DNA from: Auanema rhodensis
Taxonomy: Eukaryota; Animalia; Nematoda
Length of the DNA stretch: 64,000 nucleotides
Reading direction: 5' to 3'
Assembly: GCA_964057225.1 (NCBI GenBank)
Contig: OZ059894.1
Location: forward strand, 15,934,001-15,998,000
A program made the position numbers and the translations under genes. A model generated the notes under the pieces. That model searched no databases. It worked only from the letters and a program-made list of their open reading frames with translations, and was not told the DNA's origin. Below, one piece after another: positions 25,490 to 28,062 of the stretch; position 1 is the first letter of the stretch; each line of letters opens with the position of its first letter.

Positions 25490-28062
25490 TTACCAGCGTC
25501 CGCCACCGCCACCTCCACCGAAGTTATTATTATCATAGCTGAAAAGAATAAATTTCCAAAATGAAAAAACGACGAAGTATTCTTACCGGGTTCGTTTACC
25601 TCCAAAATCATCACCACCGTGATAATTTCTCTTATATCCCCCTCCGCCCCAACGGTTTCGCCCATTATTATTACCACCCGATCTACCTGCGAGATCATAT
25701 AACTGCTGAGAAATAGTCTGTTTAGCTTCGGACATAACTTTAATTAAGTCGCGAGCTTTAGATGCGTTTTGAGGTGTGAAGAACGTGTATGCTGTTCCCT
25801 AAAAATAAAAGATAATAAACAGATAAATGTATTCTAATTATACCTTCTGGTCACGTCTACCAGTACGACCTATTCTATGTACATAATCTTCAGAGTTATT
25901 AGGGTAGTCATAATTGATGACAAACTTAATATCATCAACATCTAAAATTAAAATATTATTTCAGAAATGTTCTAGGACTAGAAAGATTTGACTCACGTGA
26001 CACACACTACTAACCATCATACTCGATGAATCCGAACAGAGGAGCAGAGGTGGCTGCGACTCGATGGAGCACCAATTTTCCACAGGCACGAATACATCGT
26101 TACCAAGTGGCACTCCAGCAAGAAAAGGTCATGCTCTCCCGACCCCACTCCAGGGATCAATAAAAAACACGACCACACAGGCCAATACCATCTGTGTCCA
26201 GAGCAAAGAAACTACTCTAACACTGCTATGCCCCTCCATACATAAAGTTAGTGTGCACCACCGCAAAAGCAAATGAAAAAGAACATTCATTCGACAAACG
26301 ATGTTCTATCGCAACTAAAGCTGTCAAAAAGAACATCTGAACCAGAAATGCGCCTGATCCTGCCGAATAAATGGAAAGTATAAACTCACCCAATCCTCTG
26401 GCAGCCACATCTGTAGCTAAAAGAATTGGTGTTTTGCCCGTCTTGAACTCTGAAACGATAAGAAACATTAGTACAATAAAATTATGCCTGTATCTATACC
26501 ATTTAATACCCAATCTCGTTCTCCCTGATTCTTGTCTCCGTGAATACAAAGGGTTGGCCAACCATCCCGTCGCATCCATCTTGTGAGTTCATCAGCTTTA
26601 CGTTTAGTTTCAACAAAGATAATAGTCTTACATTCAGGCTAAAGAAAGAGAAATAAAAGGGTTAATTAAAGTTAATATATTTACTTGTGCCATAATGTCA
26701 TTTAATAACTGCATCATTTTTGCTTGCTTAGCACTTTCTTCTAGGACATCAACATGTTGAGCTATATTATGGTTAGCAGAAAGTTCGAGAGATCCAACAT
26801 TGAGGAAAGCAGCATCCTTCTGGAAATCAGCTGCCATGGAACGTACTTCCTTAGGCCATGTGGCTGAGAACATCAAAGTTTGGCGATCGGGCTGAAAAAG
26901 AGTTAATTTCAATAACATTGTAATATCCAATTTTGTACCCTAATTTGTCCAATAATTTTTCTGATTTGTGGCTCAAAACCCATATCTAACATCCTATCAG
27001 CTTCATCGAGAACAAGATAAGAGCATCTAAATGCAATCAAATAACGAATCAAAAAGCAAATCGAGCCTTACCGTTTCATATTAGTTTTTCCAGTATCCAA
27101 AAAGTCAAGTAAACGACCAGGAGTAGCTACAACAATATCTACACCTCTTTCAAGGTCTCTCGCTTGTGGTCCTTTAGAAGCACCACCAAATAAGCATGTC
27201 ATATTCATGCCCAAAGCTTTACAGAAATCAATAGAAACCTAAACAATACGAATTACTCTCGTCTCCTTTTAAACTATCTTACTTCTTGAACTTGTTGGGC
27301 CAATTCACGTGTTGGTAATAAAACCAGTACTGATGGTCCATCGTAACGTGCACGTGGAGTCTGTTTTGTGGTATGAAGAATAGCTGGCAGCATGAACTAA
27401 AAAAATAGATGAGATATTTACATGAAATGTGTATCACTCACGGCTAAAGTCTTTCCTGATCCCGTCTTGGCGATAGAAATAATATCTCTTCCACTGGATG
27501 CAATGGGCCAAGAAATAGATTGAATAACCGTTGGACGTTGAAATTTGGCATATAATAAATCAGTAAGCTCAGGAGGAAAATTAGCTTCATTAAACTCGAA
27601 AACTGGTCTGGGGATACCACGACCTTCAAGAGTAACTTGGTTGGATGATATCCATTGATCAATTTCATACTATAAAACAAATTAACAAAGTAACTGAATA
27701 AAAAACAAACCTGCTCTCTTCTAGTGACCGAAGCACATTCGTGATAAAAATTCTTTTGGATTGGCTTTAAAACTTCTCTCGACCAATCAACTTCACGAAG
27801 GCGGCCTCCGGGATTATTATTAGCGTTTCCACCTCCGCGGCCTCCACCACCTCTGTTGAAACCGCCTAATCATTGAAATAAAAAATACATAACATATATA
27901 TGGTGAAATACCGCCGTATCCGCCTCCACGGCCACCACCTCCATATCCACCACCGCCGTTACCACCTCCGTAACCTCCGCGGGAATCACCACCACTACTT
28001 CTAAAATAAATAATGAAAATTATATATATATAGTTTTAGACTTACTGTCTGTAATCTCTCAT
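25490..28062 (-). CDS. ddx-17: DEAD-box RNA helicase, DDX5/DDX17 (p68/Dbp2) family
   Basis: RGG-rich N-terminus; [57 protein letters not shown]; C-terminus GGGRW*. Confidence 0.97.

Follow-up and report, generated by a model that had tools for sequence, protein, structure and literature searches.

DDX5/DDX17-type DEAD-box helicases remodel RNA structure transcriptome-wide, and an excess of them is harmful: in humans their overexpression has been tied to cancer, and in plants it causes a severe stress phenotype. The ddx-17 gene of the nematode Auanema rhodensis, whose introns are otherwise very short, keeps a single large intron inside helicase motif V. Here we asked what this intron does, and whether a second 5' splice site close to its end diverts part of the transcripts away from the helicase. 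The gene lies in a stretch of 64,000 nucleotides (assembly GCA_964057225.1, contig OZ059894.1, positions 15,934,001 to 15,998,000), called the window below, to which all coordinates refer. An initial annotation of the window had proposed that the intron is an alternative-donor switch, coupled to NMD and sensing the helicase level.

The helicase gene and its large intron

By its protein matches, the minus-strand gene is the orthologue of DDX5/Dbp2/DDX17 (Table 1). The coding sequence has 13 exons, with 1623 nt and 540 codons, and runs from the ATG at 28062 to the stop codon at 25492-25490. Translated exon by exon, the frame was open throughout, with no stops. The spliced frame carried the full set of DEAD-box motifs, including ARGL/DV and HRIGRTGR, and the ends of the protein were RGG/GGY-rich (exons 2-3 and 12-13). 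The top PDB matches were DDX5, Dbp2 and DDX17. For example, exon 4 matched DDX5 (1.8e-17), Dbp2 (3.7e-16) and DDX17 (1.6e-15), followed by DDX53 (3e-10), and exon 11 had DDX17 as best match. The nearest database protein was from Auanema sp. JU1783 (92.6% identity over the core exons), and the homologue in Pristionchus pacificus carries the name ddx-17. The initial annotation had also called the gene ddx-17, in agreement with both the PDB and the nematode protein matches. In its own 181-Mb genome the gene was single-copy.

All 12 introns were borne out by spliced RNA contigs. Eleven had a length of 41-50 nt and 13-33% GC, compared with 448 nt and 43% GC for the remaining one, so that the oversized, GC-richer intron noted at motif V in the initial annotation is real. 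It extends over 26389..25942 on the minus strand (GTGAGT...TTTTAG, boundaries from RNA joints) and interrupts motif V between the first and second base of its Asp codon (ARGL/DV, phase 1). Exon 10 ends with ...GGATTGG and exon 11 starts with ATGTTGAT. The intron sequence had one occurrence in the genome.

Two observations concern the neighborhood of the gene. Just beyond its 3' end, at window positions 24800-25200, there were two near-identical direct copies of a small unit, ~180 nt apart, each with plus-strand Gly/Tyr-rich coding-like runs (GGYGGYGGY...) and with the same intron-like spacer, as if a small gene rich in glycine and tyrosine had recently been duplicated in tandem. Upstream of ddx-17, a zf-AN1 zinc-finger gene was found head-to-head in Auanema sp. 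JU1783 (L006:1-857) and in C. nigoni (L007:1-321), indicating conserved local synteny.

Table 1 Features of the ddx-17 locus, in window coordinates.
Feature	Position	Strand	Basis or remark
ddx-17 orthologue, DDX5/Dbp2/DDX17-type DEAD-box helicase, coding part	25490..28062	minus	frame check, RNA contigs, PDB matches
Exon 10, 60 nt, upstream exon common to both splice forms	26390..26449	minus	RNA joints, frame check
Exon segment complementary (12/13) to intron 26045-26057	26401..26413	minus	
Productive 5' splice site TGG/GTGAGT, removes all 448 nt	26384..26389	minus	joint in all four runs
Conserved structured non-coding body, 393 nt; spliced out of the productive form, kept as an exon extension in the unproductive one	25997..26389	minus	
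Predicted 5' domain, long stem with two inner hairpins	26284..26373	minus	window, JU1783 and consensus folds
Predicted long-range helix, 5' arm GGUGGUGCACACUA	26249..26261	minus	MFE, partition function, consensus fold
First in-frame TAG of the extended exon	26226..26228	minus	229 nt upstream of the next exon junction
Predicted long-range helix, 3' arm UAGUGUGUGUCAC, ends at -1 of the internal donor	25997..26009	minus	fold predictions
Minor internal 5' splice site ATG/GTTAGT, 73-nt intron	26009..26014	minus	RNA joint, X2
Internal "poison" 5' splice site CAC/GTGAGT, G at 25996	25991..25996	minus	RNA joint
Tail of 55 nt acting as an ordinary mini-intron; 3' splice site TTTTAG common to all forms	25942..25996	minus	
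Exon 11, motif VI	25844..25941	minus	RNA joints, frame check, PDB match

Splice choice in the RNA data

The RNA data consisted of spliced contigs from four public runs (X1-X4), all from one study, with contig depth as a rough measure of abundance. The contigs of the gene were without mismatches in the four runs, showing that the RNA came from this organism. The productive joint 25941^26390 reached depths of 22.8 (X1), 49.1 (X2), 43.4 (X3) and 62.7 (X4). The internal-donor joint 25941^25997, predicted by the initial annotation, was present in three of the four runs, with depths of 31.3 (X2), 56.9 (X3) and 64.6 (X4), and had a depth of 0 in X1. A minor joint, 25941^26015, was recovered in X2 only (depth 21.6). 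In X1, a contig covering 25913-26419 without any splice represented full retention. Unbranched RNA contigs spanned 25997-26419, and both X3 and X4 had one unbranched contig leading from exon 11 through the 55-nt splice and the 393-nt body, over the unused upstream donor, into exon 10. All four elements, the internal donor, the remaining intron of 55 nt, the exon extension of 393 nt and the in-frame TAG, were exactly as first described.

From these joints, the 5' splice sites at 26389 and 25996 compete for the single 3' splice site at 25942. Splicing from 26389 yields the complete helicase mRNA, with all 448 nt removed. Splicing from 25996 takes out a typical 55-nt nematode intron and leaves 393 nt of non-coding RNA in the message; use of the donor at 26014, or no splicing at all, amounts to the same. 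The unproductive message encodes a helicase cut off within motif V, since the read-through from exon 10 adds 54 codons and then meets the TAG at 26228-26226. Three exon junctions are found downstream of this stop, 25997^25941 (229 nt away) and two more.

Because the depths of the two branches sum to the contig depth of the flanking exon (43.4 + 56.9 vs 109 in X3, 62.7 + 64.6 vs 116 in X4), the unproductive forms can be placed between about one third and three fifths of the RNA at steady state, or roughly half, as far as contig depth allows. The form with the premature stop was about as deep as the productive one, which argues against its fast decay. Such a level is unexpected for an efficient NMD target, and leaves nuclear detention or weak NMD as alternatives. 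The switch proposed at first was thus upheld with respect to a conserved donor used in vivo and a premature stop upstream of later junctions; its NMD and helicase-sensing parts remain proposals.

Conservation and folding of the intron body

The orthologous intron in Auanema sp. JU1783 has 456 nt, and its parts differed strongly in their similarity to the window. Four-fold degenerate sites were 44% identical and the small introns 50-67%, which is the shuffle level. The core exons reached 81.1% and the body of the large intron (393/401 nt) 84.5%. The conservation spanned all 393 nt and ended exactly at the internal donor, around which 26 nt were identical in the two species. The initial annotation had stated that an unused distal donor together with an unconserved intron would speak against the switch; the donor is used and the body is conserved. 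On the comparison of 84.5% with 44% at four-fold sites, the alternative region is under strong purifying selection. The intron, more conserved than the coding exons, probably controls the amount of helicase. We also considered a recent introgression as the source of the similarity in the body; this is contradicted by the 44% four-fold identity in the flanking exons.

The 55-nt tail had exactly the same length in both species, with an identity of 67%, compared with 54% expected from shuffles. The contrast with the 84.5% of the body indicates that the body is selected as functional RNA while the tail evolves like any other intron, and it fits a real, maintained internal splice site. The minor donor at 26014 was not conserved, JU1783 having GTCTAT in its place. 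Splicing noise, with a functionless cryptic donor in a long intron, is a most improbable account of these data. By chance alone, an intron of such size would contain one or two donor-like hexamers; nevertheless, the internal donor and the 393 nt preceding it are more conserved than coding sequence while four-fold sites are saturated, and the resulting form makes up roughly half of the steady-state RNA.

Indels between the two bodies were only 1-3 nt long and frame-shifting, thus the stretch is not coding. The read-through in JU1783 met its stop earlier, in a shifted frame, and a word search with the peptide read through from exon 10 found no relatives. ORFs within the large intron, on either strand, were ruled out by the same frame-shifting indels. 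The extended exon could, in principle, encode a functional truncated isoform composed of RecA1, part of RecA2 and a tail of 54 residues, which would agree with the 54 open codons after exon 10 and with the abundance of the form. We rate this as highly improbable, given the shifted frame and earlier stop in JU1783, the lack of relatives in the peptide search and the removal of motif VI. Judged from the alignment, the conservation of the body is that of an RNA structure, and not of a peptide, a point which, like the minor donor at 26014 and the retention in X1, had escaped the initial annotation.

Small introns were gained and lost freely among JU1783 (L006:1697-2079), C. nigoni (L007:1866-2462) and C. 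bovis (L008:1090-1686). Window intron 3 was missing in JU1783, and exons 4-7 were fused in Caenorhabditis. The motif V intron was always kept and always the largest among the species compared.

The initial annotation had called the large intron structured, and the predicted fold agrees with this. It had an energy of -149 kcal/mol and a z-score of -5.16 against shuffles, whereas 22 control segments of 448 nt from elsewhere in the window averaged 0.09 (sd 1.27), the lowest being -3.17. The control with the minimum, at 62400-62847 on the minus strand, was well under the other controls. The consensus fold of the two Auanema species had 142 pairs, with 0 broken, 4 compensatory double changes and 11 one-sided compatible changes. 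For a less biased measure, the structure was predicted from the window sequence alone, the JU1783 substitutions were then scored on it, and the score was compared with 5000 permutations. The substitutions broke 15 pairs, compared with 26.6 +/- 2.9 expected, and 0 of the 5000 permutations were as good. Compensatory changes numbered 4 vs 1.26 expected (P = 0.03), the covariation evidence coming from two species only. Substitution density in this fold was 12.5% at paired and 24.5% at unpaired positions, and every indel was unpaired.

Within the predicted 5' domain, two pairs had changed from CG to UA in a compensatory way, and several had switched between G-U and A-U. A predicted 13-bp helix between 26249-26261 and 25997-26009 closes a domain of ~240 nt. 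It was predicted in both species, with an unpaired probability mostly <0.1, and both arms were invariant in JU1783. In the consensus fold, the bases of the internal donor GUGAGU were unpaired. The donor-flanking helix had a duplex energy no better than that of shuffled controls (z -0.7 and -1.5), so a donor hidden in a stem is suggested by conservation and fold predictions. The complementary segment in exon 10 (Table 1) forms a possible competing long-range pairing with 26045-26057.

The body might also be kept as the source of a separate non-coding RNA (a miRNA, a snoRNA or a Microprocessor substrate), with alternative splicing as a by-product. DDX5/17 proteins are Microprocessor cofactors, and the body is highly structured. 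Moreover, a miRNA has been reported from the human DDX5 intron (Moore et al. 2011, cited in PMC4695336). Rfam gave no match in the window at E <= 1, nor at the gathering score in the six orthologous loci, and a tRNA search found none. There was no hairpin with a continuous stem as in a pre-miRNA, conservation continued across all 393 nt and stopped exactly at the internal donor, and the body was joined to exons 10 and 11 in RNA contigs. We consider such a by-product scenario improbable, and return to the body as part of a splicing switch.

Motif V introns of other lineages and a proposed helicase feedback

To reach orthologous loci, we searched first with exon 4, where most of the early hits were short Logan or JGI fragments, then by words of a Steinernema protein, and finally looked up the contigs; all queries were single exons or database proteins. 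The set comprised loci of Auanema, Caenorhabditis, Diploscapter and Pristionchus and one further rhabditid contig, with no strongylid or clade III/IV intron. The phase-1 site was identical in six other nematode loci. At this site, the intron length was 735 nt in C. nigoni, 865 nt in C. bovis, 1153 nt in Diploscapter pachys and 786 nt in P. pacificus, and at least 384 nt in the sixth locus, an incomplete rhabditid contig. Four of the orthologous introns were folded, including that of JU1783 (z from -4.6 to -8.8); the three beyond Auanema had z-scores of -6.1, -8.8 and -4.6. Using blastn (word size 7) and nhmmer, we found no similarity of the window and JU1783 introns to the Caenorhabditis, Diploscapter, Pristionchus or L003 introns, and exact-pattern scans of metagenome contigs with invariant 21-22-mers gave no match. 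The comparison of the intron across nematodes, called for in the initial annotation, gave a divided outcome: the sequence is conserved in JU1783, and in other genera the position is the same without detectable sequence similarity.

Some of these introns had donors of their own. The C. nigoni and C. bovis introns have a common block, GGGTYCAG/GTGCGTRAGT, and the C. nigoni annotation lists two isoforms, one of them with a 63-nt internal exon ending at the donor in this block. This in-frame exon (L007:3371-3433) inserts 21 residues, VSSSSLISSGSLFPIFRILGS, into motif V of the 581-aa isoform. The 560-aa isoform is without the insert, and the homologous C. bovis stretch has stops in all three frames. 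Consensus donors were found 72 nt (C. bovis) and 64 nt (P. pacificus) before the acceptor, where ~0.1 per species are expected in the span; as a parallel to the internal donor of Auanema they are suggestive only. By analogy, the Auanema locus suggests that the large motif V intron of Caenorhabditis, Pristionchus and Diploscapter may serve the same function.

Outside nematodes, the split Asp codon aligned with D425 of Dbp2; exon 1 of yeast DBP2 has ~1272-1273 nt. Gene models of the jakobid Andalucia godoyi, a fungus, an oyster and a fluke (trematode) read through right after ARG[LI], with "G..." tails. For the DDX5 gene of Andalucia godoyi (P0144/P0272) there were two mRNAs, one of them ending by a motif V read-through, ARGL/GMFSCLFLY, which suggests that the motif V intron and its retention are very old. 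The D425 alignment and the ARG[LI] read-throughs agree with the literature, in which the DBP2 intron is described as keeping its position and length between yeasts and higher eukaryotes and as linked to autoregulation (PMC4695336, with reference to Barta and Iggo 1995). The same source describes the introns of DBP2, S. pombe dbp2 and human DDX5 (p68) as unusually long, as inefficiently or alternatively spliced, and as tied to a negative control of the helicase (PMC4695336). The nematode intron belongs to the same gene family, is at an apparently equivalent protein position (split codon aligned with Dbp2 D425), is unusually long for its gene and is alternatively spliced. Sequence similarity to the DBP2/DDX5 intron was neither expected nor seen. 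The read-out also differs, with intron retention followed by nuclear decay in yeasts (Mmi1 and the exosome in S. pombe), and mainly a second 5' splice site with a 393-nt extension in the nematode.

Plants offer a second comparison. In DRH1, the helicase opens a stem in which an alternative splice site is concealed (bioRxiv 10.64898/2026.01.23.701338). Like the plant DEAD motif (DRH1/RH46), the nematode element is found in a long intron of a DDX5-like gene, with a conserved helix based at an alternative splice site and alternative forms with premature stops, and the proposed logic is that of a helicase opening its own sensor. In plants, however, a single ~20-bp stem-loop covers an alternative 3' site and the productive form is dominant, whereas the nematode has a multi-domain fold of ~390 nt ending at an alternative 5' site and two forms that are about equal. 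With a 13-bp helix closing a 240-nt domain and no Rfam match, the nematode element falls outside the plant DEAD motif, and the likeness is one of logic only. The locus also resembles the poison exons of RNA-binding-protein genes (e.g., SR proteins), where the alternative region likewise exceeds the coding exons in conservation and brings a premature stop into the message of an RNA-processing factor. It differs from the SR type in being an exon extension by an alternative donor and not a cassette, and its conservation appears to be carried by secondary structure.

We propose the following mechanism. The retained 393 nt would fold into a large multi-helix structure under purifying selection, with one long-range helix ending exactly at the internal donor, and this fold would determine how often each donor is chosen. 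If the analogy with DRH1 in plants and DBP2 in yeast holds, DDX-17 would remodel the fold, so that more helicase would lead to more internal-donor use or retention and to less productive mRNA, a negative feedback. The unproductive product would, by the same analogy, be cleared by NMD, with holding in the nucleus as the alternative. Both the feedback by the helicase and the decay by NMD are drawn from the yeast DBP2 and plant DRH1 cases.

Alternatively, the switch may regulate unproductive splicing without sensing DDX-17, in which case some other factor, or a physical signal (temperature, stage, sex or stress), would act on its structure to tune helicase output. The samples did differ, X1 having full retention and no internal-donor joint, X2 the additional donor at 26014, and X3 and X4 only the form from 25996; and the S. 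pombe dbp2 intron, as described in a section of PMC4695336, responds to salt and DNA damage through Mmi1. Nevertheless, the sample differences may reflect depth only, as contigs drop rare variants, and autoregulation is the documented logic in both tested relatives, budding yeast and Arabidopsis. We regard a switch blind to DDX-17 as unlikely, though worth keeping in mind.

For the locus itself, we hold with high confidence that there is a conserved choice between two donors, with an unproductive product and a structured RNA under selection. The wider statement, that the 448-nt intron is a conserved splicing switch in the helicase's own pre-mRNA, including the feedback, is one towards which the analogies incline us slightly. 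Similarly, classing the nematode case as autoregulatory unproductive splicing in the conserved DDX5/Dbp2 intron seems somewhat better than an even bet, the feedback part being borrowed from yeast and plants. Our literature search gave no paper that deals with alternative splicing or NMD of ddx-17 in nematodes. To our knowledge, feedback through the conserved intron has been demonstrated only in yeast and, recently, in plants.

More speculatively, the motif V intron of DDX5/Dbp2 genes may be an ancient sensor of helicase activity, possibly as old as LECA, with position, size and fold kept in every lineage, and sequence and read-out re-invented. We put this forward tentatively, as doubtful yet conceivable. 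The read-outs under such an ancient sensor would differ, with the same reserve, between yeasts (retention with decay), plants (an alternative 3' site) and rhabditid nematodes (an alternative 5' site). If true, the nematode version would be the first in animals for which the RNA structure is defined and genetically testable in relatives of C. elegans. The locus is an animal example with a clean anatomy, in which two competing donors, a 55-nt mini-intron and a 393-nt RNA divert roughly half of the transcripts, and it points to particular helices and splice sites that could be mutated in a nematode.
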